Positions 22,626 through 59,081 of a stretch of DNA of 64,000 nucleotides are shown here, piece after piece; position 1 is the first letter of the stretch; the number at the start of each line of letters is the position of its first letter. The translations under genes and the position numbers were made by a program. This DNA is from Carpediemonas membranifera BICM (taxonomy: Eukaryota > Protista > Fornicata), in NCBI GenBank assembly GCA_019828565.1, contig JAHDYR010000025.1:620001-684000 (forward strand), given 5' to 3'. Under the pieces are notes generated by a model. The model worked only from the letters and a program-made list of their open reading frames with translations, was not told the origin of the DNA and did no database searches.

Positions 22626-22820
22626 ATGATGGCAAGAACGGCCCTTTGCCTGCTACTGCTACTTGCAATGGTTATGGCCTTCCGTACGGCCCAGATAACA
22701 ACGATCCCTTCAATAGCACAGTGTATGTGCAGTTTATGGCACATTCAGCTTGGCGATGGAGCATCGCATCCTAGAGATCTCGAACCTGCCTTCAGACGCG
22801 ACGACAGAAGATATTTTTAA
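22626..22820 (+). pseudogene. 5' remnant of a signal-peptide gene cut at the duplication junction (22721)
   Basis: MMARTALCLLLLLAMVMAF is a clear signal-peptide pattern. After 32 codons the frame enters duplicated, presumably non-coding DNA and stops at 22820. Confidence 0.5.
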
Positions 22821-23438
22821 GCACTTTGGCCAATTCGGGCCAATCGTGCAGATCCGACGGTTTGTTCATTAGTTTCGGCGTTTATCCAGCGGAAATGCCC
22901 CACATACCCTCGGCAAGGCATACTGTGTGTATAAGGAGGTTAGCGATGCTGTTAAAGCGCGTCGAGAGCTTTCCGGAAAGCCCTTTCACCACCGCTTCCT
23001 GACGATGAAGCCCTATCAGGTCCCCAGGACCGTGAAACCCGAGCTGTGAGGCACTGCGACCTGTAATAACTGTGGCAGTGATTGCTACCATTGGTATGAT
23101 CACACCAATCGGAATACTGCATGCCGGTATTGTGTCGTTTACCTCGAAAGGGTTGGGTGGTAAAACGCGCTTTCAATACTTCATTAGTCCCAGTGTCTGC
23201 TTTCGCTTCACAACCAGCATAGGATAGCCATGTGGGTATTTCTGAGCATTCCTCTCAGTCGCCTGACGCCTCAGAGCGATGGCGCGCCGTTGCTTGGCAT
23301 TGGCGTCCTCCATATCTTTGGCTGCCGAGTGCAGTGGATGCTGGGAAGTCAGCGCCCAGGTCAGAACAGCGCCCAGTGCACTCAGGGGTGGCCAATCAAA
23401 CGGAATTTTGATCGGGAGAACGTGCTTGTCAATATCAT

Positions 23439-23933
23439 ATGCTTGCGGAGCCATTAAAGGGCACCGGCTCTGCACTTCTGTGGGAAACATACCTTGAGGA
23501 TTCCCGTGAATGCCAGAGAGCTATCGAAAACGCCGAGAGTTGCCTCCAGGGACTCGATTCCACTCAAAGGAGGGAAGAGGACGAGATGAGGAGAAGACAA
23601 CAAGAGATTGCAAGGCTGAAAGCTGCCATCCGTGAACTGGAGCAGAAGGAGCGCTCAAGACAGGCTTCCAAGAGCAGTGAAATCAAGCTCCGTCGCGCGC
23701 AACAGACGGAACTCGCAGACCTCGACGCCAAGTACAGGAGAGAGATCGCTTCACGCCGCTGTGTGATCGATGAGCTTCAGAAGGCCGGCGAGCGGGCGGG
23801 CCGAAGCACGGACGCCATCCAGCAGAGACGGATCGAGCGAGAGGAGGTGCTGCGCGGCCTCAAGAAGAAGATGCGGGCGCTCGATGAGGCGACATTCATG
23901 ATCTTGGAGGCTGAGAAGCAGCTCAGCGGGTAG
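23439..23933 (+). CDS. Small coiled-coil protein, copy 1
   Basis: 164-aa ATG ORF with E/R/K/Q-rich heptads. The differences seen versus copy 2 are synonymous. AGTAAA lies downstream. Confidence 0.7.
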   Translation: MLAEPLKGTGSALLWETYLEDSRECQRAIENAESCLQGLDSTQRREEDEMRRRQQEIARLKAAIRELEQKERSRQASKSSEIKLRRAQQTELADLDAKYRREIASRRCVIDELQKAGERAGRSTDAIQQRRIEREEVLRGLKKKMRALDEATFMILEAEKQLSG

Positions 23934-24058
23934 GGCATGTGAGTGTTGAAGCCCACCCTTGAAGCCGACCTTGACGCTGATCCCGAGTAAAGCAGCTTAC
24001 TGTTCACTGGTGAGGCGGGGACGCCGGTAGTGGCGGGTGCAGGCAGACCCAGGGTCGG

Positions 24059-25831
24059 ATGACGAGTTCAAGGAGGAGAACACAAACAATGGCCGACGAG
24101 GACGAATTCAAAGACGTACAGCTGTCAGACTCGTCCGATAGCGACGAAGACTCCTTGAAACAGCTGAAATTGGACATGATCTCCAAGGATGTCGAGAAAT
24201 TTCAGATGACCGAATCGAACACTGTCGTTCCGAAGCCGCCGAGGCCCGCGCAGGACGGAAACCGCCCCGACACGATTGAGGACTTCATCAGAAACTTCCT
24301 GTCTCGCACAAACATGTCTGAGACGCTGGAGGCGTTCCAAGAGGAATGGCACGACGCGCAGGCGCGGAACGCTGGCATGATGGACGAGGCGCTGAGCCTC
24401 CCGAGCGTGTACGCGGAGAACCAGGCGCTGGAGGAGCGCATCCGCGCCATGCAGCAGGAGATGAGGCGGCTGCAGGCCCTCGCGGCAGACTCGAAGAAGG
24501 TGTACAGCCGGCTGTCGAACGCGCGCGACTACCAGAAGATGAACCACCGTCGCGTCGTCCTCGACAAGCACAAGATCATGCGCCAGGTCAAGCAGAAGCT
24601 ACACAAGATCGACGCGGCCGAGCCCGAGCTCCTCGAGATGACGCGCAAGTACGAAGTCGCGATGCGCGAACGCATGGTCACGAAGCTTGAGCGTGACCGT
24701 CTTGCTGACCGTCTGGCCACGCTGGAGAAGAGCGTCGCTGTCGAGGAGCCCAAGGAGGAGACGCCTCCCCCGCCTGACCGCACGCCGAAGAAGAAGAAGC
24801 GCAAGACGCTGACGATGGGGCCCGACGACGAGGAGCGCATCTACGAGGCGTGGGATACCGCGTACAACATGGAGCGCACTCGCGTCGAGATGTTCCACTG
24901 CGTGCGGTCGATCACGGCGCACGACAGCGGCGTCAACGGCATCTACACGCTCTGCAACAACGGCGAGGACGTCATGCTGCTCACGGCTGGTAACGACGGC
25001 ACGTGGAAGCTCTTTGACGGCACGCCTGGCGGCAGCGACACGCCCGTCATCGTCGGCCACGGCCACGCGGACTGGCTCTCGTCCGTGAGCATGGGCATCC
25101 ACGACGGCGGCACCAAGGCCACGATCGTGTCGACCGGCGGCGGTGACAACCGTGTGATCATGTACGACGCGACGACGGGCCTTGGGAGCGTGCTGGCGAC
25201 CGAGGAGGCGCCGCTGTGGGCGTCGGACTTCCACCACTCGGGCGAGTTCTTCTTGACCGCGGGGCACCGCGTCGTCAAGCTGTGGGACGTCGAGCGCAGC
25301 TGCTTCAGCACTCGCGAGCACACGTGCGCCGTCAACTCGGTGCGCTTCCGGCCGCTCAGCAACCTCTTCTGCACGGCGTCTGCCGACAACTCAGTGTCCA
25401 TCTGGGACCCGCGCGTCGACGCCAGCTGCGTCGCCACCATGTTCCACAGCACCGCTGTCAACGACGCCATCTTTTCGCCCGACGGGCAGCGGCTGCTTTC
25501 GTGTGATGCGTCAGGCTACATCGCTGTGCACGACATTCGCGCGACGAAGACGGCGCTCGACACAATCCCGCCTGTCGCGTTCCCCACCTCGCAGGGCGGC
25601 TACGGCGCCAACTCGATCGCGGTCGACCCGAGCGGGCAGACTGTCGTCGTCGGCACTAACGCCAACGAGATCCGCGTGCTCAACCTCGAGGGCGAGCAGA
25701 ACTCGATCAGCACGCTCGACTCGTCGCCGCACGTGGACGCGGTGAACGCTGTTCGGATCCACAGCGACGCGATGCGGACACTTCTGTACACCGCGAGCAG
25801 CGACGGCAGCGTCAAGATCTGGAGCACGTGA
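24059..25831 (+). CDS. SPAG16: PF20/SPAG16 axonemal central-pair WD40 protein, copy 1
   Basis: IEDFIRNFL...ETLEAFQEEW, RDYQKMNHRRV and KYEVAMRERMVTKLERD match the PF20 N-terminal coiled coil. C-terminal WD40 repeats. Start may be ATG 24089. Confidence 0.88.
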   Translation: MTSSRRRTQTMADEDEFKDVQLSDSSDSDEDSLKQLKLDMISKDVEKFQMTESNTVVPKPPRPAQDGNRPDTIEDFIRNFLSRTNMSETLEAFQEEWHDAQARNAGMMDEALSLPSVYAENQALEERIRAMQQEMRRLQALAADSKKVYSRLSNARDYQKMNHRRVVLDKHKIMRQVKQKLHKIDAAEPELLEMTRKYEVAMRERMVTKLERDRLADRLATLEKSVAVEEPKEETPPPPDRTPKKKKRKTLTMGPDDEERIYEAWDTAYNMERTRVEMFHCVRSITAHDSGVNGIYTLCNNGEDVMLLTAGNDGTWKLFDGTPGGSDTPVIVGHGHADWLSSVSMGIHDGGTKATIVSTGGGDNRVIMYDATTGLGSVLATEEAPLWASDFHHSGEFFLTAGHRVVKLWDVERSCFSTREHTCAVNSVRFRPLSNLFCTASADNSVSIWDPRVDASCVATMFHSTAVNDAIFSPDGQRLLSCDASGYIAVHDIRATKTALDTIPPVAFPTSQGGYGANSIAVDPSGQTVVVGTNANEIRVLNLEGEQNSISTLDSSPHVDAVNAVRIHSDAMRTLLYTASSDGSVKIWST

Positions 25832-25960
25832 GCGGTGTGTATATAGATGTTTTTTAAACCGTGTCAGGTCCTTTATGTAATTATGTAATTCCCTTTTGGG
25901 AGTGATCGCAGACGCTTGTTACAGCTGTGGTTTCAGTGAAGAGGCAGCACCGGTATGCCT

Positions 25961-26104
25961 CTAGCGCGCCTCGTCTACCTCTATTTCCGGCACCGCCATC
26001 CAGCAGGTGTCGTCTGGGACGGCCGTGCTGGTCACCTCGGGCATGGCGAGGGGGTCCCGACCCAGCCAGATGAAGCGGGTCAGCATTGATCTCTCAAGCC
26101 TCGA
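25961..26104 (-). pseudogene. 3' fragment of the actin-like gene at 35271-35909
   Basis: Near-identical to 35271-35414; homology stops at the duplication boundary. Confidence 0.9.
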
Positions 26105-26246
26105 CAGACGGGCATGACACTCCTTGTACGTTTGGATTCACTGCATGGCTAAGCGAGGCAGGGTTCTATTTATTGGGCACGCTTGTACACGAAAACCAGA
26201 ACTTACGTCGTATCACAAGCGGCCGGCTGAAACCAGCCATTCCTCC

Positions 26247-26330
26247 GTGACCCTGCCCGGCTGCGCTAGTGCCCGCAACCGTACTTCTGCGAGCACTTGG
26301 CCAGAGTGATAGCCATATGATGGGAGTTGC
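26247..26330. repeat. 84-bp dispersed non-coding element with hairpin, copy 1
   Basis: GTGACCCTGCCCGGCTGCG...GCCATATGATG.GAGTTGC recurs at 58998-59081 in unrelated flanks. Confidence 0.9.
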
Positions 26331-26788
26331 ACCTTCTCCTGCCAACAGTATCAACAACCAACTCAACGATAGCAGGGCGGCCAGTGGTCTTCCCAACGCG
26401 GCATGCCATGATATCTTGAGCAAGATATGACTGCTGGGCATCGACTCCCGGACAGAAGCAGCCGAGTCACACAAGCCATTTAGTGGTGTCAGGAAGCTCC
26501 GGGCTGGGTCGAGTCTGCAAGAGAGGAGACATGATCCGTCTCGACTGGGGCAAACTCGACTGCCCAAAAAGCCCGTTCTTCTAAGCACACACACCCGCCC
26601 CCGGATGCCGTTGCGTTGACGGGCGCATTGCTTGAACAAAATGGGTTGAGAAAAAAGAGAAACGGCCTAAATGAAGCTGGAATGCCCCAACCGCGACTCT
26701 GACCAGAGTTGACCTGTCGACTTTTGACGACTTTGGGACTTGACGTCCCTGTGAGAAGACTACACAGATTTGCACAAACCACGCGGAA

Positions 26789-28468
26789 ATGACAGCTAAA
26801 GCGCCAGAGATAAGCAAAGATGAACTTGTTGAGTTGTATAGTATTGCTAGTACCGTCACACGGGACCTTCCCGGCAACATTCCCGGCTTCCTCAAGGCAG
26901 CCTATGAAGCACAGTTCAAAGCCCGTTTCCCGAAGAAAATTGCGGCAGTCGAGACAGATATGTCAAAGAGCGATCTTGTAGCCACGCTTGAGGCGCTCAA
27001 AGGCTTTAACCCAGAGGCCCAAGCATCTATTGACCGAGCTTGCACAGTATTGACCGACGGCGCAGCGCTCTCCATGAATATCGAGCTGAAGGAGGGCCAA
27101 GGCCTCCCCGTAGCACTGCACACGCTGCTCCAGGGCACTGTGTGGGCGATCCTCATGTGCGGCATCGCCGACCCGGACTTCACCCCCAGCAAGCTCCGTC
27201 ATCGGGCCCCCGCCAGAAAGAGAGATCAGTACACTGCTAAGGCTAGACACCTCTGGTTCATGTGCAAGAAGTTCTACTTCGCCCATCAGATGTCGGAGAA
27301 GGACGGCTGGCAGTCAGCCAAATGGCCCTGCTCGCGCTTGTACTCCGGCCGCCTCTTCGTCAAAGAAGGTCACGTACAGTTGCCCGAGTATGCCCACAGC
27401 TACTTCAAGTACACCCGTGTCCGCGTCCCGGCCGTCTTGGCAGTCGAGATGTCCGCCAAGCCGATGGACTGGCCCGTTTTGGTCACATCAAAGGGACTTT
27501 ACCTCTGGAGTATCGCCCATAACGAAGACGAGGGTCGCAATGAGGATCTTGCCCCAAGACTGATGGAGTTCCGCCACTGCAACAGCGCTGTCGCGTCCTT
27601 TTACGACAGTCTGCCCGTCTGGCACAAGAATCGAATCGTGGTCGACCTGCAGGTGAGGAAGCACGCTCTCTTGTGCACACCAGTTGGCGCGTGCTTCACA
27701 TTACCCGGAGAACCCTTCTTCTTGACCGCTCACGACATGCCACCCTCCTTCATACCCACGAAAGCCCGCATGACGCGCTACGTCGATGTGTTCTCCTCAG
27801 AAACGACCCATATGATCACTGGATACAACGAGCGCGGGGAGCTCGGCTTTGGCCAGCAGCTGGGGTATCGGCAGGATCCCGTCCGGCATTACAAGAAGTT
27901 CCCCCTGCCGTTCGAGGGATTTGCCGGAGACAGCCAGGGGCAGGGCTTCAACGTCTTTGTGCTCGGCGGCCGGGTGTGTTACGCGGGGGTCGTGCCCCAG
28001 TACCGCGAGCTCGGGGAGCTACACACCGTGTTCCGCCACTTCCTCCACCTTGAGTGCAACGACGGGCTTCACCGGATGGAAGACGGGGAGATAGTGATGC
28101 CGCTGACCGAGCTGACGTTCCCGGAGACCGTGAAGCGCTTCTGGTGCACGAGCATCGCAGTCTACTGTGTTTACGAGGGCCGCACCGAGGTGACCCTCGA
28201 CAACAACTGCAGCGTCCCCCCTGCACCCGATACGGTCACATACAGCCTCCCCTTCGAGGCCACGGGGGTGACTGCAGCGGCACGTGGCGAGGAAGACGGC
28301 GACCGGTTCTTCAGAGACAGCGAAGCAGTTTGGTGGTGCGTTAAGGAGGAATGGAACGTCGACATGCCGACGTTCGGGGAGCCCATGGCGATGGATGACG
28401 GCAGCATGGACGAGCTCCTCTTCGTGCTTCGGGCCGACGAGATTGTGCCTGTCAACCACGTGGTGTGA
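26789..28468 (+). CDS. Family member F3
   Basis: GNIPGFLKAAY, LSMNIELKEG, LHTLLQGTVWAIL, DPD, LWFMCKKFYF, LPVWHK and RCC1-like TGYNERGELGFG. Confidence 0.9.
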   Translation: MTAKAPEISKDELVELYSIASTVTRDLPGNIPGFLKAAYEAQFKARFPKKIAAVETDMSKSDLVATLEALKGFNPEAQASIDRACTVLTDGAALSMNIELKEGQGLPVALHTLLQGTVWAILMCGIADPDFTPSKLRHRAPARKRDQYTAKARHLWFMCKKFYFAHQMSEKDGWQSAKWPCSRLYSGRLFVKEGHVQLPEYAHSYFKYTRVRVPAVLAVEMSAKPMDWPVLVTSKGLYLWSIAHNEDEGRNEDLAPRLMEFRHCNSAVASFYDSLPVWHKNRIVVDLQVRKHALLCTPVGACFTLPGEPFFLTAHDMPPSFIPTKARMTRYVDVFSSETTHMITGYNERGELGFGQQLGYRQDPVRHYKKFPLPFEGFAGDSQGQGFNVFVLGGRVCYAGVVPQYRELGELHTVFRHFLHLECNDGLHRMEDGEIVMPLTELTFPETVKRFWCTSIAVYCVYEGRTEVTLDNNCSVPPAPDTVTYSLPFEATGVTAAARGEEDGDRFFRDSEAVWWCVKEEWNVDMPTFGEPMAMDDGSMDELLFVLRADEIVPVNHVV

Positions 28469-29736
28469 GTGACTCTTCCTGCATGCACGCGTCAGCTATA
28501 AAGCAAACTGGGTTTGATGAGTTCTTTTATGCCAACCACGCTTCAGGCGCTCCAGCGTCTGAAGGCTCATTCAGATGCCCGTCTCGGCCGGGGTCCACGG
28601 GTCGACGTCGACTGGGGTAATCTCACGCTCTTCTCGAGAAGATGGCGGCACACACGCGACCAGCTCAGCCACCCCATCTGACACTCTGCCCACTTTGAAC
28701 CACTGGTCGGTGGGGTCGCGGAACGAATGGACACACTGGCCACCTGACATTCTTCTGCCAAGTGCTGTCGCCTTAAAGGGCACAGAGCACTGCTTGTCGT
28801 AATCACACAGATGAGTGCTGCCCTCATTGACCCAGACGAGAGTCAACTGGTCACAAAAGAACCCCTTGACCCTCGCAAGGAAGCGGAGCGGGGTGGCTGT
28901 GAGGCACCTGTCGCCCTCTCTGTATCCTGGCAGCAGGCCAGACTGGACGATATGAGAGAGGACTTGCCCGGCGAACAGCAGCTGACGGCTGCTGAGGAAG
29001 ACATGGAAGGATTGAGATGGCATGATCCGGTCGACTCTGAAAGGAAGCTCCTCGAAGCCAGCCATATCATTCTCGTGCCCGAGTCCCAGCTGGCCATGAC
29101 AGTTATTGCCACTGATCACATACCGATTGCACATGGAGAGTATGACAATATCATATTCATGCACGATGTGATCTGGGATAAATCCAGCGGGCACAGTGAC
29201 TGGGTGGAAGCGGTTATCGTATTCTTGAACAAGGTCTGTATACCATCGTGTCTCGTCGCCCGCCATGACAGTGCCGACCGGGGTGACTATGAACGTCTGC
29301 CATCCCTTCATCGACACATCAGTCACCATCGTATGCTTCTCCCAAGGGGGCAGGCTGGCCTCGAGCTCGGCGACCTTGGTACAGGCGGGGAAGGTGAGGC
29401 GGGTCGGGTCGACGAACTCAGATGACTTGAACCCCAGCTGGCCATTTCCGCTATACCCCCATCTCCACATGCCCTTGGGCGTCCTGGCGATGTGGGTGAT
29501 CACGTTGCTCTCGACCTCGAGGGCCCTGGGCATCCTGGCCCTGGTGAGGGCGGTGTGGTTGGCAGTACTGAGCATGAAGAGTCGGCCCATGTACATGCGG
29601 TGGTGGTGGCATATGTCGTGCCAATTCCACTGATAGCTCTCGCCGTCCTTCTCTGCCACATTCAGCGCGAAGAAGAACTTGCGGCAGAGGAACCAGAGGC
29701 ACTTGGCCTCGGGGGTGAGAGCCTTGCGGATCTTGT
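28346..29736. repeat. Segmental duplication B, copy 1 (3' ends of F3 and F4; direct repeat of 56946-58336)
   Basis: Offset 28600; only three nucleotide differences noticed. Confidence 0.97.
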
Positions 29737-30256
29737 TATGCAAATCGGTTGCGTCTGGGTACATTGCTTGGGATCGTGTCAGCAAGCGGTCTTGTATATC
29801 TGGGTTGGCCCCCGCCTCGACGAGTAGGGCCCATATTGTACCCTGCAGGAGGGTGAAGATGCGCTGCGGGAGGTCCTCGCCGGGCGCCAGAGGGATGTTC
29901 ATGCTCAGCTGGGGCCCGCGCGTGAGTATCGCTGTAACCCTGTTGACAAGGTCGATGGCGCTGCAATGGTGGAGGTCGAGGGCAGCGAGTGCGCTGGCGA
30001 CTTCATCGGCCGTGGCTGGCTCGGCTTCGCCGTCATCGTCCGGAATCTCCCCGCCGAACTCGTGGGTGAAGGCGCTTCGCATGAGTGCGAGAACTTCGCC
30101 GCGACATTTGGCAAAAATGCGGGAGTTAGCAGTGATAAAAGCGTCGCGCTGGATGCTCTTGCTGCTCATAGACATTGATGAGCGCATTGCGGCGAGACGA
30201 GCACGTGAAGCGTCCATTCTCGCGATGCGGGCATCGATCTCATCATCAGGAAGCAT
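28571..30256 (-). CDS. Family member F4 with an N-terminal coiled-coil extension
   Basis: GPQLSMNIPL, TLLQGTIWALL, GANPD, LWFLCRKFFF, and RCC1-like WGYSGNGQLGF and SGNNCHGQLGLGH. First ATG at 30256; the frame stays open to 30436. Confidence 0.88.
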   Translation of the reverse strand: MLPDDEIDARIARMDASRARLAAMRSSMSMSSKSIQRDAFITANSRIFAKCRGEVLALMRSAFTHEFGGEIPDDDGEAEPATADEVASALAALDLHHCSAIDLVNRVTAILTRGPQLSMNIPLAPGEDLPQRIFTLLQGTIWALLVEAGANPDIQDRLLTRSQAMYPDATDLHNKIRKALTPEAKCLWFLCRKFFFALNVAEKDGESYQWNWHDICHHHRMYMGRLFMLSTANHTALTRARMPRALEVESNVITHIARTPKGMWRWGYSGNGQLGFKSSEFVDPTRLTFPACTKVAELEASLPPWEKHTMVTDVSMKGWQTFIVTPVGTVMAGDETRWYTDLVQEYDNRFHPVTVPAGFIPDHIVHEYDIVILSMCNRYVISGNNCHGQLGLGHENDMAGFEELPFRVDRIMPSQSFHVFLSSRQLLFAGQVLSHIVQSGLLPGYREGDRCLTATPLRFLARVKGFFCDQLTLVWVNEGSTHLCDYDKQCSVPFKATALGRRMSGGQCVHSFRDPTDQWFKVGRVSDGVAELVACVPPSSREEREITPVDVDPWTPAETGI

Positions 30257-30502
30257 CGTGCCATTCAAACGAGCAATATCGGCATCAATGTCGGAGATGT
30301 GGGCGTCCAGCCGCTGAAGAGCCTCTTGAGCATCGTTATCGAAAGAAATGACTCGCTTGCAGTCGCCCGACTTGGACCATCCCGATGCAGTCGCTGAACA
30401 TCCGAGCGCCAGTGCCGACTCCACCGGTTGAATCAAACTACATCGACACGAGACCCAAGGAACTCAGCGCGGGCCTCTCCCAGAGAAGATCCAAGCGGCA
30501 CC

Positions 30503-31903
30503 CTAGATCTTCGTCGGGTACGGCGCCCCGTCCAGCGTCAACTCCCCGCCGGCCTCCACAAGTTTCCACGCCTCGCGCCGCACCTCCTCGGTCAGCCTCG
30601 CCCACAGGTCCTGGAGCTGCGTGTACTCCGCCTGTGCGGAGACCCGCTCGGGCCCGGTGAGGATCGGCCGGCCGGTATGTACGCCCAGAGACTTCTCCAG
30701 AGTCGCGATCTGGACCTTCAACTCCTCCCGTCGCTTGACCGTTGCCACTGCCGCTTCCCAGAGTGTCAGGTCAGTTTCAAGCTTAGTGACCGTCGACAGG
30801 TGCATGTATGGAGCCACCATAGCGATCTTCTGCCCCAGCGGCATTCGCAGCGCTGTCCACACGGTCGCCACGCGGGGCCAGATGCCGTCCAGGGGCCTTG
30901 CATCGGGGACCACGACCTCGCTGGACTCGAACTCGGCCTCGCGGTACTGCTTGGAGTACGCCTCGAACAGCTGCCGAAAGCTGAACGACTCCGGCAAATT
31001 GAGCGTCTTAACCGGCGTGTACTGCCGCCAGATCCTCTCAAACGTGGTCGGCTGGCTGTTACTCTGGCCGAATGTCGCGTTTACCGCGGTCGTGAGCAGG
31101 TCCGAGGGGGCTGGGCTGGGCGGTGTGGGTGGGAACGTCGTGACGCCAAGCCCCGCCTCCTCCAGGGCGAGGACGAACTTGGACTTAGGGCGCATGGCGG
31201 GCGCAGTCCCCTCGTCCGTCTCGGCCTCCACTTGTTCTGCCTCGCTGGCTTTCCTAGACGAGGCCACCATCGCCTCAAACAGCCGCTGCTCCTCCCTGAT
31301 CAACCGGACGAGCACCTCCTGGGCATGATCAAACCGCAGCTCGCCCGCCTTGAACTCAGTGCCGTCGGGCGGTCTGTCCGAGACCTCCTCGACCAGTGAC
31401 CCGTACCGCCACGCCATCTCGGGCTGGACTGTAAACGGCCCCGTATAGTCTGCCACAGTGTACTCGTAAACCTCGGGCAGGGGCATCGTGGCGGCCATGG
31501 CCTTGAGTTGCTGGTAGTCACACACCACGGGGAGCAGTCCATGGTCAAGGTGCTCGACCCCGAATAGCTCGTGGAGTGTCTTGGGCTTGGGCGGGGGCGG
31601 GTGCTCGGGCTGGTCCTCTGGAAGAAGGGTAGGAGTGTCTCGGGCGACCTTGAGGGGGGTGTCGAGACCGTTCGCCATGCGGAGGAAATGAGACGTTGCG
31701 TTAGCAACAACTTGCTTTCTGGCTTCATTGACGTCTTGAACGCTCAATTCGTTTGTGCTTTCGCGATTCTTGCCATTAACGAATTCAATGAACTGCTTGC
31801 GTGCTTCTACGTCCTGCTTGACCTTCTTCTCCGCATCCACAACCCCAGATCGTATTTCTTTCAGCCTTTCACGCACTAGAGTGCGGATGCTGTTCGTTTC
31901 CAT
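30503..31903 (-). CDS. CCDC87-like coiled-coil protein (MAP65/Ase1-related C-terminus)
   Basis: VWTALRMPLGQKIAM, LWEAAVATVKRRE and LTLDGAPYPTKI resemble CCDC87 C-terminal motifs as recalled. First ATG at 31903. Confidence 0.6.
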   Translation of the reverse strand: METNSIRTLVRERLKEIRSGVVDAEKKVKQDVEARKQFIEFVNGKNRESTNELSVQDVNEARKQVVANATSHFLRMANGLDTPLKVARDTPTLLPEDQPEHPPPPKPKTLHELFGVEHLDHGLLPVVCDYQQLKAMAATMPLPEVYEYTVADYTGPFTVQPEMAWRYGSLVEEVSDRPPDGTEFKAGELRFDHAQEVLVRLIREEQRLFEAMVASSRKASEAEQVEAETDEGTAPAMRPKSKFVLALEEAGLGVTTFPPTPPSPAPSDLLTTAVNATFGQSNSQPTTFERIWRQYTPVKTLNLPESFSFRQLFEAYSKQYREAEFESSEVVVPDARPLDGIWPRVATVWTALRMPLGQKIAMVAPYMHLSTVTKLETDLTLWEAAVATVKRREELKVQIATLEKSLGVHTGRPILTGPERVSAQAEYTQLQDLWARLTEEVRREAWKLVEAGGELTLDGAPYPTKI

Positions 31904-32748
31904 GATCAGGATATTGTATTTCGATGAAGTTCGCTCGTTGTGAGAAATGAACAACTCCTATCGAGATCTAACTTGTCCTAGCCGTGCACCCTGCTCACAG
32001 CCTGATACGGACTAGAAAGGGTTAAAATTGTGTATGTGCAGTTTATGGCACATTCAGCTTGGCGATGGAGCATCGCATCCTAGAGATCTCGAACCTGCCT
32101 TCAGACGCGACGACAGAAGATATTTTTAAGCACTTTGGCCAATTCGGGCCAATCGTGCAGATCCGACGGTTTGTTCATTAGTTTCGGCGTTTATCCAGCG
32201 GAAATGCCCCACATACCCTCGGCAAGGCATACTGTGTGTATAAGGAGGTTAGCGATGCTGTTAAAGCGCGTCGAGAGCTTTCCGGAAAGCCCTTTCACCA
32301 CCGCTTCCTGACGATGAAGCCCTATCAGGTCCCCAGGACCGTGAAACCCGAGCTGTGAGGCACTGCGACCTGTAATAACTGTGGCAGTGATTGCTACCAT
32401 TGGTATGATCACACCAATCGGAATACTGCATGCCGGTATTGTGTCGTTAACCTCGAAAGGGTTGGGTGGTAAAACGCGCTTTCAATCCTTCATTAGTCCC
32501 AGTGTCTGCTTTCGCTTCACAACCAGCATAGGATAGCCATGTGGGTATTTCTGAGCATTCCTCTCAGTCGCCTGACGCCTCAGAGCGATGGCGCGCCGTT
32601 GCTTGGCATTGGCGTCCTCCATATCTTTGGCTGCCGAGTGCAGTGGATGCTGGGAAGTCAGCGCCCAGGTCAGAACAGCGCCCAGTTGCACTCAGGGGTG
32701 GCCAATCAAACGGAATTTTGATCGGGAGAACGTGCTTGTCAATATCAT

Positions 32749-33243
32749 ATGCTTGCGGAGCCATTAAAGGGCACCGGCTCTGCACTTCTGTGGGAAACAT
32801 ACCTTGAGGATTCCCGTGAATGCCAGAGAGCTATCGAAAACGCCGAGAGTTGCCTCCAGGGACTCGATTCCACTCAAAGGAGGGAAGAGGATGAGATGAG
32901 GAGAAGACAACAAGAGATTGCAAGGCTGAAAGCTGCCATACGTGAACTGGAGCAGAAGGAGCGCTCAAGACAGGCTTCCAAGAGCAGTGAAATCAAGCTC
33001 CGTCGCGCGCAACAGACGGAACTCGCAGACCTCGACGCCAAGTACAGGAGAGAGATCGCTTCACGCCGCTGTGTGATCGATGAGCTTCAGAAGGCCGGCG
33101 AGCGGGCGGGCCGAAGCACGGACGCCATCCAGCAGAGACGGATCGAGCGAGAGGAGGTGCTGCGCGGCCTCAAGAAGAAGATGCGGGCGCTCGATGAGGC
33201 GACATTCATGATCTTGGAGGCTGAGAAGCAGCTCAGCGGGTAG
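32749..33243 (+). CDS. Small coiled-coil protein, copy 2
   Basis: Protein identical to 23439-23933. Confidence 0.7.
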   Translation: MLAEPLKGTGSALLWETYLEDSRECQRAIENAESCLQGLDSTQRREEDEMRRRQQEIARLKAAIRELEQKERSRQASKSSEIKLRRAQQTELADLDAKYRREIASRRCVIDELQKAGERAGRSTDAIQQRRIEREEVLRGLKKKMRALDEATFMILEAEKQLSG

Positions 33244-33368
33244 GGCATGTGAGTGTTGAAGCCCACCCTTGAAGCCGACCTTGACGCTGATCCCGAGTAA
33301 AGCAGCTTACTGTTCACTGGTGAGGCGGGGACGCCGGTAGTGGCGGGTGCAGGCAGACCCAGGGTCGG

Positions 33369-35141
33369 ATGACGAGTTCAAGGAGGAGAACACAAACAAT
33401 GGCCGACGAGGACGAATTCAAAGACGTACAGCTGTCAGACTCGTCCGATAGCGACGAAGACTCCTTGAAACAGCTGAAATTGGACATGATCTCCAAGGAT
33501 GTCGAGAAATTTCAGATGACCGAATCGAACACTGTCGTTCCGAAGCCGCCGAGGCCCGCGCAGGACGGAAACCGCCCCGACACGATTGAGGACTTCATCA
33601 GAAACTTCCTGTCTCGCACAAACATGTCTGAGACGCTGGAGGCGTTCCAAGAGGAATGGCACGACGCGCAGGCGCGGAACGCTGGCATGATGGACGAGGC
33701 GCTGAGCCTCCCGAGCGTGTACGCGGAGAACCAGGCGCTGGAGGAGCGCATCCGCGCCATGCAGCAGGAGATGAGGCGGCTGCAGGCCCTCGCGGCAGAC
33801 TCGAAGAAGGTGTACAGCCGGCTGTCGAACGCGCGCGACTACCAGAAGATGAACCACCGTCGCGTCGTCCTCGACAAGCACAAGATCATGCGCCAGGTCA
33901 AGCAGAAGCTACACAAGATCGACGCGGCCGAGCCCGAGCTCCTCGAGATGACGCGCAAGTACGAAGTCGCGATGCGCGAACGCATGGTCACGAAGCTTGA
34001 GCGTGACCGTCTTGCTGACCGTCTGGCCACGCTGGAGAAGAGCGTCGCTGTCGAGGAGCCCAAGGAGGAGACGCCTCCCCCGCCTGACCGCACGCCGAAG
34101 AAGAAGAAGCGCAAGACGCTGACGATGGGGCCCGACGACGAGGAGCGCATCTACGAGGCGTGGGATACCGCGTACAACATGGAGCGCACTCGCGTCGAGA
34201 TGTTCCACTGCGTGCGGTCGATCACGGCGCACGAAAGCGGCGTCAACGGCATCTACACGCTCTGCAACAACGGCGAGGACGTCATGCTGCTCACGGCTGG
34301 TAACGACGGCACGTGGAAGCTCTTTGACGGCACGCCTGGCGGCAGCGACACGCCCGTCATCGTCGGCCACGGCCACGCGGACTGGCTCTCGTCCGTGAGC
34401 ATGGGCATCCACGACGGCGGCACCAAGGCCACGATCGTGTCGACCGGCGGCGGTGACAACCGTGTGATCATGTACGACGCGACGACGGGCCTTGGGAGCG
34501 TGCTGGCGACCGAGGAGGCGCCGCTGTGGGCGTCGGACTTCCACCACTCGGGCGAGTTCTTCTTGACCGCGGGGCACCGCGTCGTCAAGCTGTGGGACGT
34601 CGAGCGCAGCTGCTTCAGCACTCGCGAGCACACGTGCGCCGTCAACTCGGTGCGCTTCCGGCCGCTCAGCAACCTCTTCTGCACGGCGTCTGCCGACAAC
34701 TCAGTGTCCATCTGGGACCCGCGCGTCGACGCCAGCTGCGTCGCCACCATGTTCCACAGCACCGCTGTCAACGACGCCATCTTTTCGCCCGACGGGCAGC
34801 GGCTGCTTTCGTGTGATGCGTCAGGCTACATCGCTGTGCACGACATTCGCGCGACGAAGACGGCGCTCGACACAATCCCGCCTGTCGCGTTCCCCACCTC
34901 GCAGGGCGGCTACGGCGCCAACTCGATCGCGGTCGACCCGAGCGGGCAGACTGTCGTCGTCGGCACTAACGCCAACGAGATCCGCGTGCTCAACCTCGAG
35001 GGCGAGCAGAACTCGATCAGCACGCTCGACTCGTCGCCGCACGTGGACGCGGTGAACGCTGTTCGGATCCACAGCGACGCGATGCGGACACTTCTGTACA
35101 CCGCGAGCAGCGACGGCAGCGTCAAGATCTGGAGCACGTGA
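33369..35141 (+). CDS. SPAG16: PF20/SPAG16, copy 2
   Basis: Identical to copy 1 except AHDS versus AHES. Confidence 0.88.
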   Translation: MTSSRRRTQTMADEDEFKDVQLSDSSDSDEDSLKQLKLDMISKDVEKFQMTESNTVVPKPPRPAQDGNRPDTIEDFIRNFLSRTNMSETLEAFQEEWHDAQARNAGMMDEALSLPSVYAENQALEERIRAMQQEMRRLQALAADSKKVYSRLSNARDYQKMNHRRVVLDKHKIMRQVKQKLHKIDAAEPELLEMTRKYEVAMRERMVTKLERDRLADRLATLEKSVAVEEPKEETPPPPDRTPKKKKRKTLTMGPDDEERIYEAWDTAYNMERTRVEMFHCVRSITAHESGVNGIYTLCNNGEDVMLLTAGNDGTWKLFDGTPGGSDTPVIVGHGHADWLSSVSMGIHDGGTKATIVSTGGGDNRVIMYDATTGLGSVLATEEAPLWASDFHHSGEFFLTAGHRVVKLWDVERSCFSTREHTCAVNSVRFRPLSNLFCTASADNSVSIWDPRVDASCVATMFHSTAVNDAIFSPDGQRLLSCDASGYIAVHDIRATKTALDTIPPVAFPTSQGGYGANSIAVDPSGQTVVVGTNANEIRVLNLEGEQNSISTLDSSPHVDAVNAVRIHSDAMRTLLYTASSDGSVKIWST

Positions 35142-35270
35142 GCGGTGTGTATATAGATGTTTTTTAAACCGTGTCAGGTCCTTTATGTAATTATGTAATT
35201 CCCTTTTGGGAGTGATCGCAGACGCTTGTTACAGCTGTGGTTTCAGTGAAGAGGCAGCACCGGTATGCCT

Positions 35271-35909
35271 CTAGCGCGCCTCGTCTACCTCTATTTCCGG
35301 CACTGCCATCCAGCAGGTGTCGTCTGGGACGGCCGTGCTGGTCACCTCGGGCATGGCGAGGGGGTCCCGACCCAGCCAGATGAAGCGGGTCAGCATTGAT
35401 CTCTCAAGCCTCGAAAGATGATCCAAATTCAACCAATACTGCTCCAGAGCCTCCTCCAAGGCCTCGCTATCGGGTTCTGAGCTCGCGATGAACACGGCGT
35501 GCTTGTCGAGGATTGATCCGTGCATACAGGGGATGAACGCCGTATACTTGGTAGTGGAGACAACCACCGTGGATATGCGGAGGCCAACCGCCAGTGGAAC
35601 GCTTCCTTCGCGGGCGTACAGCGTGTGATCGATGCCGAGTGCCGTGAAGACAGTGGCGAGGGATGCTCCAAGCATGCTGGGAGCTAATGCTGGGACAAGG
35701 ATTGTAACTACCATCACATCATCCGGATTGATGTACATCTTGGCGATTTCTGGCACGAGGACGTTCATATTGTAAGTGTGAAGAGCGTGCTCGCTGACAC
35801 CAGGAGCAATCGCAAATGACGGCAAGGAGAATATTTCTATACATGAAGGGACCGCATACATGTGCATGCTACTCTCCGTAACATCCAGGATCACCTCAAA
35901 CACGGCCAT
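35271..35909 (-). CDS. Highly divergent, short actin-related protein (Arp10/Arp11-like?)
   Basis: EVILDV (phosphate-1-like), LATVFTALGI and IPCMHGSIL (cf. actin VPIYEGYAL). Only 212 aa, so the family call is tentative. Confidence 0.45.
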   Translation of the reverse strand: MAVFEVILDVTESSMHMYAVPSCIEIFSLPSFAIAPGVSEHALHTYNMNVLVPEIAKMYINPDDVMVVTILVPALAPSMLGASLATVFTALGIDHTLYAREGSVPLAVGLRISTVVVSTTKYTAFIPCMHGSILDKHAVFIASSEPDSEALEEALEQYWLNLDHLSRLERSMLTRFIWLGRDPLAMPEVTSTAVPDDTCWMAVPEIEVDEAR

Positions 35910-35976: not shown

Positions 35977-36377
35977 TTCCTTGCCGGCCATGAGGCCTGG
36001 TGCATGGGGTACGGCGGGGTGTCCGACTGCAGCCGAGTTGCTTGGCAACGAACGAACGACATGAGCAATGAAGGCAAGAAGACGCGAGAGGCGCTGATCA
36101 CTGCCCATCGGCTCTCAATCACGGCCACGAGCAGCATCGCAGGCGACATCCCCTCGCTCATGGCCTGCGCGTACCAGCGCCACTTCAACGAGGAGATTCC
36201 GCTCAGATCTGGCGTGCTGTCCGCATTAAGGACGTTTATCCACAATCATACAACCACAGACGCGCTGCAAGATGGCCACGATCTCGAATCCCTCATCGCC
36301 ACGCTCTCAGAGATCCCCCCTCTCGAACCATCCGCGCAAGCCCTCCTCGACCGCGCCCGCTCGATCCTCACCAGCGG
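35977..36377. repeat. Duplication C, copy 1: F5 upstream region and 5' CDS (inverted copy at 58516-58919)
   Basis: Reverse complement is near-identical to 58516-58919. Confidence 0.93.
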
Positions 36378-37779
36378 TCCACGCCTAAGCATGAACATCG
36401 TGCTCGCAGAGGGCGAGGAGCTCCCGGTCGCCCTGCACACGCTTCTCCAGGGCACGATCTGGGCGACCCTGCTGCATGGAGGGGTCGACCCGGACCTGGG
36501 GATGACGAACGAGAAGGCTACTGAGCACCACATGCGCCGCAGGGACAGCGATAAGTTCCCCTGGTTTCTCTGCCGGAAGTTCTTCTTCGTCCACGAGGTC
36601 GCCAGCCGCGATTGCCAGAGCCATTGGGCAACGATCCAGTGCCCCGCCTGGCGAATGCTGTATGCGGGTAGACTCTTTGAACGCAGTCACCCCAACCCCA
36701 TCGTACCGGACCTAGCTCCCCAGGACACCGGGTTTTCCTGGATCCGGGCCCCGCCGATCGTCTCCATCTTCAACATGGACTGTGACTCCTTTCTACTGCT
36801 TGCCACACCACATGGTATCTATAGTTATGAGAAAAGCACCTTATTCTTTTCGGTCAGCGGCCGCTTCCCGCGAGACCACGAACTGCCCGCGCGGGTCGAC
36901 TTCGCCAACTGTCCTAGTGTGTCGGGGCTCGAGCGACAGCTGCCACTGTGGCACAAGCACCAAGTGCTTGTCGACATGGCCGCGGACGCGTTTGGATGCG
37001 TCGTCCTGACACCTGCCGGCGTGGCTGCCGCGGGAGGTGTGCAGGACTTTATGCTTGGCGACACTGACAATGAGGTTGGTGAGAATGTGGCCGATGCCTA
37101 CTTCCTGCCAGTTCCCCTGCCCGCACGCTTTGTCCCAACACGCCTGATAGCAGATATTGATTTGGATGTGTTCATTTTGTCCATGGGCGATCGGCAGATG
37201 ATTGCCGGGTCCAATTGGCGCTCCCGTCTTGGCATCGCTGATGAGCATGGCACCTTCGTCAACCTTCCGTTCCATGTCGACCAGATAGTCTTCGTCGAGG
37301 AGACCTTCTGCATTTTTCGTGACGGCAAAACGCTCCTGTTCGCCGGCGCAATTCATGATATTTTTGTGAATCCAAGCATGATTTCATTCGAGACGGTTGA
37401 AACCACCCACCCCCACCCGACGCAGTTCAAGACCCCAGTTAGCCGACTCTTCATGGATCGCAGGGACTTGCTGGCCGCAGCTGTTGTTGCTGAGGGCAAG
37501 ACCCACTGCGCCTTGATGTGCCTCCCCCCAGGCATCACTGACGTCGAACCTGGCCCCCACTCGGCCGCACTGTCCGTCTGCCACCGGGTGCTTTCATTTG
37601 AAGTGACCAGCGTGGCCCTGCTCGGGACCCACAGTTCCAGGCTACTCCTGCAGAGACCGGTCGAGGGGAAGGACACCTGGGTGACGGTGGACCTCATGAC
37701 CAGCGAAGACCCGACTCCCGTGGATAGAACCACCCTGGATCGGACACCTTTCATCCTCGACGAGCTTCCTTTGGTGTAA
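36061..37779 (+). CDS. Family member F5
   Basis: MSNEGKK..., GDIPSLMACAY, GPRLSMNIVL, LHTLLQGTIWATL, DPDL, WFLCRKFFF, LPLWHK and LSMGDRQMIAGSNWRSRLG. Start chosen by alignment with paralogues; the longer track start overlaps the neighbouring gene. Confidence 0.9.
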   Translation: MSNEGKKTREALITAHRLSITATSSIAGDIPSLMACAYQRHFNEEIPLRSGVLSALRTFIHNHTTTDALQDGHDLESLIATLSEIPPLEPSAQALLDRARSILTSGPRLSMNIVLAEGEELPVALHTLLQGTIWATLLHGGVDPDLGMTNEKATEHHMRRRDSDKFPWFLCRKFFFVHEVASRDCQSHWATIQCPAWRMLYAGRLFERSHPNPIVPDLAPQDTGFSWIRAPPIVSIFNMDCDSFLLLATPHGIYSYEKSTLFFSVSGRFPRDHELPARVDFANCPSVSGLERQLPLWHKHQVLVDMAADAFGCVVLTPAGVAAAGGVQDFMLGDTDNEVGENVADAYFLPVPLPARFVPTRLIADIDLDVFILSMGDRQMIAGSNWRSRLGIADEHGTFVNLPFHVDQIVFVEETFCIFRDGKTLLFAGAIHDIFVNPSMISFETVETTHPHPTQFKTPVSRLFMDRRDLLAAAVVAEGKTHCALMCLPPGITDVEPGPHSAALSVCHRVLSFEVTSVALLGTHSSRLLLQRPVEGKDTWVTVDLMTSEDPTPVDRTTLDRTPFILDELPLV

Positions 37780-46620: not shown

Positions 46621-49050
46621 CTACACGATGTGCCTGATGATGCCCTCGACATGGCCCTTCATCTGCTCCACATCACACCCGACGTATCGCCTGATGACCT
46701 CCGTCCAGTATACGAACAGACTAGCAATGGGGACCGAGATGGGGTCGTTAACACGGTCCAGCGCCTCAGACGCCGCCTCGACGACCGTGTCCGCCTTGCC
46801 GGGGTACATAGCCCGCAGCTTGGCCGCAAACACAGCGAGGATCTCCTCCTTGGCGCTGAGAGTGGTCGTCTCGATCACCGAGTCGTCTCCGATGTCCGTA
46901 AGCTGCACCAGCTTGCTGAAGAATCCCAGCTCTCTCGCCACGAGGAACTCCTCCGTGTCTGAAACGAGGATGACGTGCAGCGCGACCCTCTTGTGCGGGG
47001 GGGAAGCGCTGGCCCTTCATCCACTCGCCCAAGGCGAAGAGGAGCCGCTCGCCGGCGTTGTAGAGGGCGTCGAAGTTGTCGATGACGATGACGCCCCGCA
47101 GCGCGTCTATGGCCTCGTTGAAGACCTCCTCCATCTTCTCCATGAAGCCCGAGCCCTCCCGCATGGCGTTCACGATCTTCACGAACTCCGCACCCGACGC
47201 CCGGGCGAGCTGGACCGCGAACGAGCTCTTGCCGCTGTTCTTCTGGCCGTGGACGACAGTGAGGCCGACGCCCGAGACCATGCCGTGGTTCCTGACGTCC
47301 GCGCCGATGACCTCGCCCCGCTCCTCGACCAGAGCGTTGATGCGGGGGATGTCCACCCAGCCGTTGCGCTGGATCTGCTGCATCTGGACGTAGTCGGAGC
47401 CAAACATGGGGTGTGTCTTGTGGATGGCCTCGAAGATGTCGTCCTTGCTGACGAATATGCTCGTGACGTTTCCCGCGTTCACCTCTGCCATCTGCTCGAT
47501 CGTGAAGTCATCCGCCGACATGCCGAGTGCCTTGTCGACGGCGATGTTGACGGCCTTACCGATGACGTTGGCGATCTCAGCGCCCGTGTAGTTCTCCGTC
47601 TCGGCCGCGAACATGTCCAACACCTCAGCGAGCTCGGCGTCCTCCATTGGCTGGGCCTTGGTGTCCCGTATGAACGTGTTCTTGTCCCTAAGATGCTTCG
47701 TGTGGATCCGGAAGATGTCCGCCCGCCCCGCTCTATCGGCCAGCCGGACCGGGATCTGAACCGAGAAGCGGCCAGGCCGGAGCATGGCTGGGTCGAGGAG
47801 GTCGAGCCTGTTGGTCATGCCGATGACGAGGAAGTTGGACGACTGGTTGACGCCGTCGAGCTTGGTCAGGAGCTGGTTGACGATGCCGTCCTTGACGCCC
47901 GTGTTGTCGCCCTTGGACCCGCGCTTCTGGAAGAGCGCGTCGATCTCGTCGAACACGATGACATGGAGCCGAGACTCGGCGCCCTTCTCCTCCCACTCCT
48001 TCTCTGCGGGCTCGAACAGCTTGCGGACGTTCTCCTCGGACTGGCCGACGTACTTGTTGAGAAGCTCGGGCCCGTTGACGATGATGGGCTCCTCGCAGTC
48101 GAGGAAGGCCGACAGCTGCCGGGCGAGCAGCGTCTTGCCGGTGCCGGGGGGCCGTAGAGCAGCAGGCCCTTCACGTGGTCCTTGTCGCGGTAGAGCCCGA
48201 GGTTGGGCGGGATCATTCGGGACTTGAGGACCTCGGAGAAGACCGAAAAGATCTCCTTGTTCAGCCCGCCAACGCCGAACGACTCGACGTCGAACTTGCC
48301 CCGGTTGAACACGGACATGCTGTAGGCCGCCTGGTAGTCGCCCGACAGGCCCATGAGACGGTGGGTGGCCGAGGCCTTGGGCGACGACGCCGTGCCGAGT
48401 CGCTTGTAATGCTCGCTCAGGTCCTCCTTCTGGACGAGCACCTGGGTCTTGTCTGTGACCGTGTAGAACCTGGCTGGGTCGGTCTCCTCGGTGTCGTCGA
48501 CGCCCACGACGCTGTCGACTCTCACTAGGAGGTCGATGGATGTGGTGGGGCCCTCGTCCATGGGGACGTTCAGCACAAAGAGCGTGTCCTTGCACAGAGC
48601 TGAGGGGACGTCCTTGGCGGCCTTGAAGGCGTCGGGCAGGGCCTGACGGACACCCTGTAGTGAGCCCATGTCCGACCTGAAGGCGTTGACGACGTTGGTG
48701 GTGTTCACAGTGAACTCGGCGGCATATGACTTGATGGAGTGGATGCTGAGTGTCACATGTGCGGCGATGTCCTCGTCAGCGAAGGGTGTCGTGTGGAGTC
48801 GGGAGGTGGGGCCGAGCTTGAAGTCGGTACGCTGCGCCAGGTTGAAGTAGAAGCTGGGCTCGGTCTCTGTGCCTGTAGGATCGTATTTGACTCGATAAAC
48901 CCGGTTGAGAGTTCCAATCTGGTTTGAAAACTTCACCTTGGTGACTGCTCCGGGCTTGAGGGAGTGAGGGCCGCGGGCAAGAACGATATTGGAGTTAGCC
49001 ATTCCATACGCTCCAACAATGTCCTTTTTGTACGATGAAATGGGGTTCAT
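46621..49050 (-). CDS. NSF: NSF/Sec18 AAA ATPase with two frameshifts in G homopolymers (48146-48151 and 46997-47003)
   Basis: Three track ORFs join into N domain, D1 (LLYGPPGTGKT, NGPELLNKYVGQSEENVRKLF, FDEIDA, LRPGRF) and D2 (GQKNSGKS). Adding one G and removing one G restores an ~809-aa frame. Confidence 0.9.
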
Positions 49051-56945: not shown

Positions 56946-57068
56946 GAGGAATGGAACGTCGACATGCCGACGTTCGGGGAGCCCATGGCGATGGATGACG
57001 GCAGCATGGACGAGCTCCTCTTCGTGCTTCGGGCCGACGAGATTGTGCCTGTCAACCACGTGGTGTGA
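56946..57068 (+). pseudogene. 3'-terminal fragment of F3 (EEWNVDMPTF...VNHVV*)
   Basis: Identical to 28346-28468; has no 5' part. Confidence 0.92.
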
Positions 57069-58336
57069 GTGACTCTTCCTGCATGCACGCGTCAGCTATA
57101 AAGCAAACTGGGTTTGATGAGTTCTTTTATGCCAACCACGCTTCAGGCGCTCCAGCGTCTGAAGGCTCATTCAGATGCCCGTCTCGGCCGGGGTCCACGG
57201 GTCGACGTCGACTGGGGTAATCTCACGCTCTTCTCGAGAAGATGGCGGCACACACGCGACCAGCTCAGCCACCCCATCTGACACTCTGCCCACTTTGAAC
57301 CACTGGTCGGTGGGGTCGCGGAACGAATGGACACACTGGCCACCTGACATTCTTCTGCCAAGTGCTGTCGCCTTAAAGGGCACAGAGCACTGCTTGTCGT
57401 AATCACACAGATGAGTGCTGCCCTCATTGACCCAGACGAGAGTCAACTGGTCACAAAAGAACCCCTTGACCCTCGCAAGGAAGCGGAGCGGGGTGGCTGT
57501 GAGGCACCTGTCGCCCTCTCTGTATCCTGGCAGCAGGCCAGACTGGACGATATGAGAGAGGACTTGCCCGGCGAACAGCAGCTGACGGCTGCTGAGGAAG
57601 ACATGGAAGGATTGAGATGGCATGATCCGGTCGACTCTGAAAGGAAGCTCCTCGAAGCCAGCCATATCATTCTCGTGCCCGAGTCCCAGCTGGCCATGAC
57701 AGTTATTGCCACTGATCACATACCGATTGCACATGGAGAGTATGACAATATCATATTCATGCACGATGTGATCTGGGATAAATCCAGCGGGCACAGCGAC
57801 TGGGTGGAAGCGGTTATCGTATTCTTGAACAAGGTCTGTATACCATCGTGTCTCGTCGCCCGCCATGACAGTGCCGACCGGGGTGACTATGAACGTCTGC
57901 CATCCCTTCATCGACACATCAGTCACCATCGTATGCTTCTCCCAAGGGGGCAGGCTGGCCTCGAGCTCGGCGACCTTGGGGCAGGCGGGGAAGGTGAGGC
58001 GGGTCGGGTCGACGAACTCAGATGACTTGAACCCCAGCTGGCCATTTCCGCTATACCCCCATCTCCACATGCCCTTGGGCGTCCTGGCGATGTGGGTGAT
58101 CACGTTGCTCTCGACCTCGAGGGCCCTGGGCATCCTGGCCCTGGTGAGGGCGGTGTGGTTGGCAGTACTGAGCATGAAGAGTCGGCCCATGTACATGCGG
58201 TGGTGGTGGCATATGTCGTGCCAATTCCACTGATAGCTCTCGCCGTCCTTCTCTGCCACATTCAGCGCGAAGAAGAACTTGCGGCAGAGGAACCAGAGGC
58301 ACTTGGCCTCGGGGGTGAGAGCCTTGCGGATCTTGT
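56946..58336. repeat. Segmental duplication B, copy 2
   Basis: Copy of 28346-29736. Confidence 0.97.
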
Positions 58337-58831
58337 CATGCATATTAGTCTTACCTGGCTGCTCCTCTCGAGCCTTCTTCAGCATCCTGCCCTCGAGGTC
58401 GGGGTTGGCCCCGCCACCCACCAGACACGCCCACACCGCGCCCTGGTTCAGCGTGTGCAGCGCGACCGGGAGCTCCTCGCCATCCGCGAGCTCGACGTTC
58501 ATGGACAGCGGGGGGCCGCTGGTGAGGATCGAGCGGGCGCGGTCGAGGAGGGCTTGCGCGGATGGCTCGAGAGGGGGATCTTGCAGAGCGTGGCGAGGAG
58601 GGATTCGAGATCGTGGCCATCTTGCGGCGCGTCTGTGGTTGTATGATTGTGGATAAACGTCCTTAATGCGGACAGCACGCCAGATCTGAGCGGAATCTCC
58701 TCGTTGAAGTGGCGCTGGTACGCGCAGGCGATGAGCGAGGGGATGTCGCCTGCGATGCTGCTCGTAGCCGTGATTGAGAGCCGATGGGCAGTGATCAGCG
58801 CCTCTCGCGTCTTCTTGCCTTCATTGCTCAT
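57171..58831 (-). CDS. Family member F6, a mosaic of F5 (5'), an unknown donor (middle) and F4 (3'); 1-bp frameshift in a G run at 58573-58577
   Basis: ATG at 58831 (MSNEGKK, as in F5). The coding strand has C5 where F5 has C6; restoring one base gives a 553-aa frame. Confidence 0.85.
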
Positions 58832-58919
58832 GTCGTTCGTTCGTTGCCAAGCAACTCGGCTGCAGTCGGACACGCACCCCGCCGTACCCCATGCACCAGG
58901 CCTCATGTCTGGCAGGGAA
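58516..58919. repeat. Duplication C, copy 2 (inverted)
   Basis: Reverse complement of 35977-36377 with few changes. Confidence 0.93.
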
Positions 58920-58997
58920 ACTGTGCCCCGGCCAGAGACAGGCGCCTCGGCATGAGTGTGAAAGAGAGTCTTGGGTGAACAGTGGTGCTGAGGGCGA

Positions 58998-59081
58998 GTG
59001 ACCCTGCCCGGCTGCGCCAGTGCCCGCAACCGTACTTCTGCGAGCACTTGGCCAGTGAGCTAGCCATATGATGTGAGTTGC
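58998..59081. repeat. 84-bp dispersed non-coding element, copy 2
   Basis: Matches 26247-26330. Confidence 0.9.

Follow-up and report, generated by a model that had tools for sequence, protein, structure and literature searches.

A probable whole-gene duplicate and its chimeric neighbours in a family of RCC1-like propeller genes of Carpediemonas membranifera that appears to recombine through a conserved core

The window analysed here is a stretch of 64,000 nucleotides of the Carpediemonas membranifera genome (C13:620001-684000, in an assembly of 24.24 Mb and 69 contigs), and the mosaic evidence presented below comes from the assembled sequence of this one strain. C. membranifera is probably haploid, and its assembly combines nanopore data with short-read polishing (PMC8516963), the long reads having been processed with ABruijn and the result polished iteratively with Pilon using short reads (PMC8516963 supplement). 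The window holds the family genes F4, F5 and F6, the features of which are collected in Table 1; copies beyond the window are named by their position in kb on C13 (g710, g715, g721, g743, g763 and g775). Another family member, at window positions 1-1086, is cut by the window start.

Several other features of the window deserve mention. An ORF of 5154 amino acids (5888-21352), with N-terminal and C-terminal hydrophobic segments and repeated cysteine motifs, is likely to encode a giant surface protein. A 3389-bp direct duplication (22721-26108 and 32030-35418; 99.8% identity), carrying a coiled-coil gene and a WD40 gene, flanks F3 and F4. The ORF upstream of F4 (30438-31928) recurs with 96% identity at C8:963071-964567, and part of it also adjoins a family gene at C8:903.9 kb. 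Finally, an NSF-like ATPase is split over overlapping ORFs in different frames (46766-49050), so that uncorrected indels may exist in the assembly.

Table 1. Family features in the window (window positions).
Feature	Position	Strand	Remarks
F4, subfamily-B N-module and core on F6/g721-type propeller	28571..30436	-	switch inferred
F5, F6-clade N-module on a propeller without close relative	36061..37779	+	switch near 36378
F3 3' tail copy, left end of the F6 block	56946..57068	+	identical to 28346-28468
Spacer separating F3 from the convergent F4/F6-type gene, part of the duplicated block	57069..57170	.	
F6 coding region, probable whole-gene g721-type copy, broken by a 1-bp frameshift	57171..58831	-	
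F6 RCC1-like beta-propeller	57174..58238	-	weak Pfam RCC1/WD40_RLD matches; fold from sister model
F6 helical core (LSMN...PDL, variable loop, KIRKAL...WFLCRKFF), includes the "third donor"	58239..58515	-	
F6 N-module, predicted four-helix bundle; same type grafted onto F5	58516..58831	-	
Patch identical to N-truncated g775-type copies	58569..58610	-	42 bp; carries the C5 frameshift
F6 upstream region common to g721 and g715	58832..59024	-	
g721-type upstream DNA joined to F3-upstream DNA	58998..59081	+	27-bp homology, 20 bp exact

F6 and its full-length sister

A preliminary description of this DNA read F6 as a mosaic of three donors, namely F5 for the front, an orphan source for the middle and F4 for the back. 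The underlying observations were borne out: 58919-58516 repeats F5 in inverted orientation (96.3% identity), 58336-56946 follows the F4 3' part and then the spacer into the tail of F3 with 3 differences, 58515-58337 has no near-identical match inside the window (best F5 at 64%, F4 at 58%), and both joins are in register. The three-donor reading itself arose because only sequence inside the window had been compared. On the same contig, 43 kb from F6, its one full-length sister g721 (C13:720736-722814) matches F6 56946-59024 at 98.9% identity over 2080 bp, with 98.5%, 98.3% and 99.2% in the first, middle and last segments, respectively, and it is a better match to the first segment than F5. The approximately 20 differences between F6 and g721 are scattered, without a step or change of partner at either join, and the alignments of g710 and g715 to F6 likewise cross both joins. 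The closest relatives of the first two segments are g710, g715 and g721, and those of the third are F4 (99.5%) and g721 (99.2%). Thus, a single g721-type parent explains all three segments as well as, or better than, three donors.

The middle segment, for which a BLASTn search for the third donor had been suggested, turned out to be typical of the family, with at least 40 copies at 91-97%, and it matches g710, g715 and g721 at 98-99% along with both of its flanks. The interval 58250-58620, which encloses both joins, has counterparts of 91-97% identity in at least 40 paralogues, spread over five contigs; short-read contigs pile up there, and none spans F6. The supposed third donor is the most widely shared core of the family. 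The two joins are real and were correctly placed; they had been assigned to the wrong gene, since they belong to F4 and F5 rather than to F6.

The 42-bp patch is the sole foreign tract found in F6. It is common to five other copies, and the three of these that were examined are all N-truncated. The F6 indel is a run of five cytosines (C5, 58573-58577); six C13 loci contain the frameshifted 32-mer and none contains its in-frame C6 version, and the haplotype carries C5 at 6/6 loci, whereas copies that share the flanking 5-mer have C6. Given this distribution of the two forms of the 32-mer, the break in the F6 frame is probably genuine rather than a base-calling error. Random nanopore error is disfavoured by the 6/6 haplotype linkage, and carry-over during polishing is the alternative source. 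The frameshift divides the gene into a 110-aa 5' ORF and a 443-aa ORF that starts at the Met of LSMN, the product of the latter being on record as P0001. It follows from the frameshift borne by the patch that F6 is probably a pseudogene, or else yields only the 443-aa product devoid of the N-module. In the tetranucleotide ATGA at 58499-58502, the stop of the 5' ORF and the Met codon of LSMN overlap. Several annotated family members also begin at this Met, and N-less products may be a recurring form in the family.

With respect to the origin of the F6 block, it starts within the F3 tail, and its upstream end consists of g721-type DNA joined to F3-upstream DNA. Next to g721 lies an F3 copy, within a block that matches window 25636-29745 at 99.6% identity. 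At the g721 locus, the two homologous junction sites form direct repeats with a spacing of 4.1 kb. F6 would thus cover the kind of joint that arises in a circle or a tandem duplication, and its upstream junction may be the signature of circular permutation or tandem duplication. The block is inserted 55 bp past the stop of a pecanex-like gene. At its left junction, which is common to g763, a short-read contig continues 30 bases beyond, these contigs possibly being polishing data. The flanks of g763 are near-identical to the F6 locus over 3 kb, and it is F6, not g763, that retains the longer piece of F3-upstream DNA. Despite its F6 flanks, g763 agrees over 425 bp without a difference with g775, which lies 12 kb away, so that this conversion tract has an identified partner.

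The region surrounding these copies on C13 is itself rearranged. The g763 duplication includes a frameshifted pecanex-like copy, the first ~200 bp of which differ from the window copy (C13:765-767.6 kb). At C13:710-722.4 kb, a 5.45-kb tandem unit contains the 3'-truncated family copies g710 and g715 together with two other ORFs. It also includes 127 bp of the F3 tail, which starts at 28344-28346 like the F6 block, next to a different flank; this start is possibly a recurrent break site. Two LTR-retroelement-like inserts with 95-bp terminal repeats (C13:700.7-710.0 kb) lie between g710 and 241 bp of upstream sequence, which shares 99.6% identity with the g743 upstream region.

F5 and F4 as chimeric genes

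The N-module of F5 falls inside the F6 clade in the N-module tree (99/99 support), and at the protein level F5 is 98% identical to g710 in the N-module versus 28% in the propeller. No DNA match to the F5 3' part was found elsewhere among the scored candidates. The DNA switch lies immediately before LSMN. A 4-bp marker upstream of F5 is of the g743/g763 type, not the F6 type, and points to a donor of the former type rather than F6 itself; the F5 N-module copies no single locus.

The F4 core is 96% identical to that of the subfamily-B protein P0003 while the propellers are 48% identical, and compared with g710 it reaches 95% in the propeller and 23% in the N-module. The N-module and core match P0002/P0003, both of subfamily B, until the FFF motif, and the propeller that comes next is of the F6/g721 type. 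For the subfamily-B genes, the F4 donors among them, and for those on C26, the comparison used protein sequences and coordinates, and the switch, deduced from donor proteins rather than donor DNA, probably lies within the 68-bp block 29736-29669. On these comparisons, F4 and F5 are true chimeras and the recipients of the exchanges, so that the donor direction, previously held to be beyond determination, is fixed. An origin of F4 and F5 as reciprocal products of a single inversion was considered and rejected: their cores differ, and the F4 5' part has relatives elsewhere while the F5 3' part has none among the scored candidates.

Protein architecture and family-wide exchange

In a structural model of the intact sister g763 (pLDDT 85), residues 1-106 form a four-helix N-terminal bundle and residues 107-195 the helical core, after which an RCC1-like propeller follows. 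Foldseek searches with this model retrieve WBSCR16, RCC1 and UVR8 as the best matches (E ~1e-10; 1.5e-10), and Pfam RCC1 or WD40_RLD matches are found in 50-53 of the 61 members. Thus, the propeller belongs to the RCC1-like beta-propeller superfamily. The first 195 residues gave no significant sequence or structural match, the best VIA hits being to generic ferritin-like bundles (Z 7.6). The possibility that the core is an F-box adaptor was likewise pursued with Pfam, a PDB profile, Foldseek and VIA (on a model of pLDDT 88), and none of these searches, which could miss a short degenerate motif, returned an F-box. No Pfam match to CRN (LFLAK/HVLV) was detected among 62 N-terminal parts. The model displays no obvious membrane anchor, and the proteins look cytosolic.

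The family appears to be specific to C. membranifera, with well over 100 copies. A profile search recovered 160 clusters at E values up to 1e-30, most of which cover the N-terminal part or the core, and the protein matches (97 and 85), together with 10 distant representatives that were checked, are all from C. membranifera. A viral or other-species origin was rejected, given that the named members checked are all from C. membranifera and that the viral matches are generic RCC1 propellers.

Multiple lines of evidence indicate exchange across the family. Among 26 F6-subfamily genes, chosen for similarity to F6, the PHI statistic is 0.669 versus 0.813 +/- 0.006 in permutations (0/2000, P<0.0005), and in the same genes divergence at 4-fold sites is 0.065 in core1 versus 0.21 in the propeller; the low value in core1 implies homogenisation of the DNA and not protein constraint alone. 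Identical propeller runs of at least 90 nt occur in 31 of 318 divergent pairs versus 1.4 expected. Furthermore, five C26 genes located within 90 kb (332-421 kb) share an N-module and core1 that are 98-100% identical, whereas the propellers of the four compared are only 24-38% alike. In an unbiased scan of 152 proteins for near-identical tracts between distant paralogues, all N-module tracts end at profile columns 99-140, inside the core, in the stretch from LTSG to PDL; for closer genes, tract ends are seen within the propeller as well. Subfamily-A cores can also carry subfamily-B N-modules, and the switch points are then staggered across LSMN...QG.

These results support the view that swaps between distant paralogues end in the core, in LSMN...PDL or KIRKAL...CRKFF, although such an outcome is partly expected from surviving homology and hence is no proof of a hotspot. 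Shuffling of modules at the conserved core is supported for the family, and grafting of the whole N-module is seen in F4, F5 and the C26 cluster; the core is the family's recombination platform. The homology-guided, in-register exchange of N-modules and propellers that had been proposed for F6 accordingly holds for the family (PHI, F4, F5 and C26) and not for F6 itself.

Recombination mechanism and relation to known systems

We consider it highly probable that F6 is a recent duplicate of a single g721-type parent and that the family is a pool of genes recombining by non-allelic homologous recombination. F6 would have originated as a segmental duplicate of a g721-type gene, with its frame subsequently broken by the 42-bp patch; the locus, once formed, would also have been copied again as g763. 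As for the repair pathway and its timing, we infer that these exchanges take place in a haploid organism, probably during mitotic growth, by gene conversion or by break-induced template switching. Exchange would start or resolve where paralogues remain near-identical: close paralogues could swap patches anywhere along the gene, whereas distant ones would retain sufficient identity in the core alone. With identity limited to the core, the whole 5' module would be swapped, in frame by construction, and no dedicated machine would be required for such whole-module swaps. The swaps would involve mostly neighbours on the same contig, as in the cases of F5, F4 and the C26 cluster, and conversion would homogenise the core, which would thereby stay recombinogenic.

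It is unlikely that the mosaics are artefacts of assembly or polishing between paralogues. The assembly was indeed polished with short reads (PMC8516963 supplement), near-identical copies (g721, g715 and F3') contain private 1-bp indels, and an artefact of this kind could account for the 42-bp patch and for the single-site sharing between F4 and F6. However, the swapped modules span 400-1400 bp, exceeding the 150-nt reads, and they join, in frame, genes that are 24-38% alike; nor is the F5 N-module copied from any single locus. Moreover, short-read contigs, albeit perhaps from the polishing data, agree with the assembly at the left edge of the F6 block and in the upstream DNA of the g721 type, and the linkage of C5 to its haplotype at all six loci, with C6 in the copies that have the same flanking 5-mer, argues in the same direction.

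In trypanosome mosaic VSG genes and Borrelia vlsE, segmental conversion produces patchwork genes, and truncated copies can serve as donors. A programmed cassette system of this type, in which silent donors feed expressed genes, is very unlikely here, even though the joins are in register and N-truncated copies exist, one type of which apparently gave the 42-bp patch. Donors and recipients are alike full-length, dispersed genes, the recipients including many intact ones; the only pseudogene-derived tract seen inactivates its recipient; and the tracts track homology. No expression site and no silent or tandem cassette array was seen in 164 kb of contiguous DNA, nor was a single expression site, a silent archive or directional conversion found in the family. 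The analogy with VSG and vlsE drawn in the preliminary description was too strong for exchange between full-length dispersed genes with no cassette array found. Finally, assembly of F6 at its own locus from an F5 front, a third-donor middle and an F4 back is hardly credible: within the window the best match does switch from F5 to none to F4, and a few F6/F4 alleles are absent from g721 (58268-58254, 57612 and 57374), but the same front-middle-back linkage recurs in g721, g715, g710, g763, g743 and distant relatives at graded identities of 80-99%, which makes it ancestral, and the F5 upstream marker, being of the g743/g763 type, is unlike that of F6.

With regard to the biological meaning of recombination among these non-allelic copies, F6 itself is ordinary and the interest lies in the family, which is apparently undescribed, nothing on it having been found in the literature. 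C. membranifera lacks ORC and Cdc6, and replication by homologous recombination, Dmc1-dependent and BIR-like, has been proposed for Carpediemonas (PMC8516963). The shuffling may plausibly be linked to this mode of replication, and given this background, the identifiable donor-recipient pairs could serve directly as markers with which to measure ectopic recombination in clone trees. Our guess at the function is a cytosolic binding repertoire, with the variable propeller binding the ligand and the N-module and core contacting a common partner. It is a tentative and rather doubtful conjecture that neighbours retain one shared N-module, with propellers only 24-38% alike, owing to selection for local sets acting through a common module, as a modular intracellular recognition repertoire of a metamonad reshuffled by ORC-less, Dmc1-dependent replication; if so, sets of neighbours would assemble or signal through the common module, and the unusually high rate of reshuffling would be a by-product of replication.

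The propeller resembles RCC1, UVR8, the HERC RLD and giant-virus F-box/RCC1 proteins by Pfam and by fold; the family differs from these RCC1-like domain proteins in its ~12-18% identity and in its N-terminal 195 residues, which have no significant match, F-box included. In its mode of diversification, the family resembles the Phytophthora Crinklers (CRN), in which similar N-termini are found on unrelated C-termini, the HVLVVVP motif marks the breakpoint, exchanges are short and pseudogenes are many (PMC3726527). Both are lineage-expanded, with near-identical N-termini on very different C-terminal parts and a breakpoint at a conserved motif. The Crinklers, however, are effectors secreted by pathogens, and their C-termini adopt heterogeneous folds, whereas the C. 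membranifera family, that of a free-living organism, has an RCC1-like propeller throughout and no sequence similarity to CRN. In the var genes of Plasmodium falciparum, ectopic recombination is mitotic, with crossovers in 4-48 bp identity blocks that are always in frame and, between paralogues of 63% mean identity, in register with domain order kept (PMC4270465). The in-frame, in-register crossovers between divergent paralogues inside identity blocks are common to both families; unlike the present one, var genes encode surface antigens under mutually exclusive expression, with rates obtained from clone trees. Taken together, these sequence comparisons point to ectopic recombination of the Crinkler or var type, and hence to a free-living protist, probably haploid, that shuffles domains in CRN/var style.
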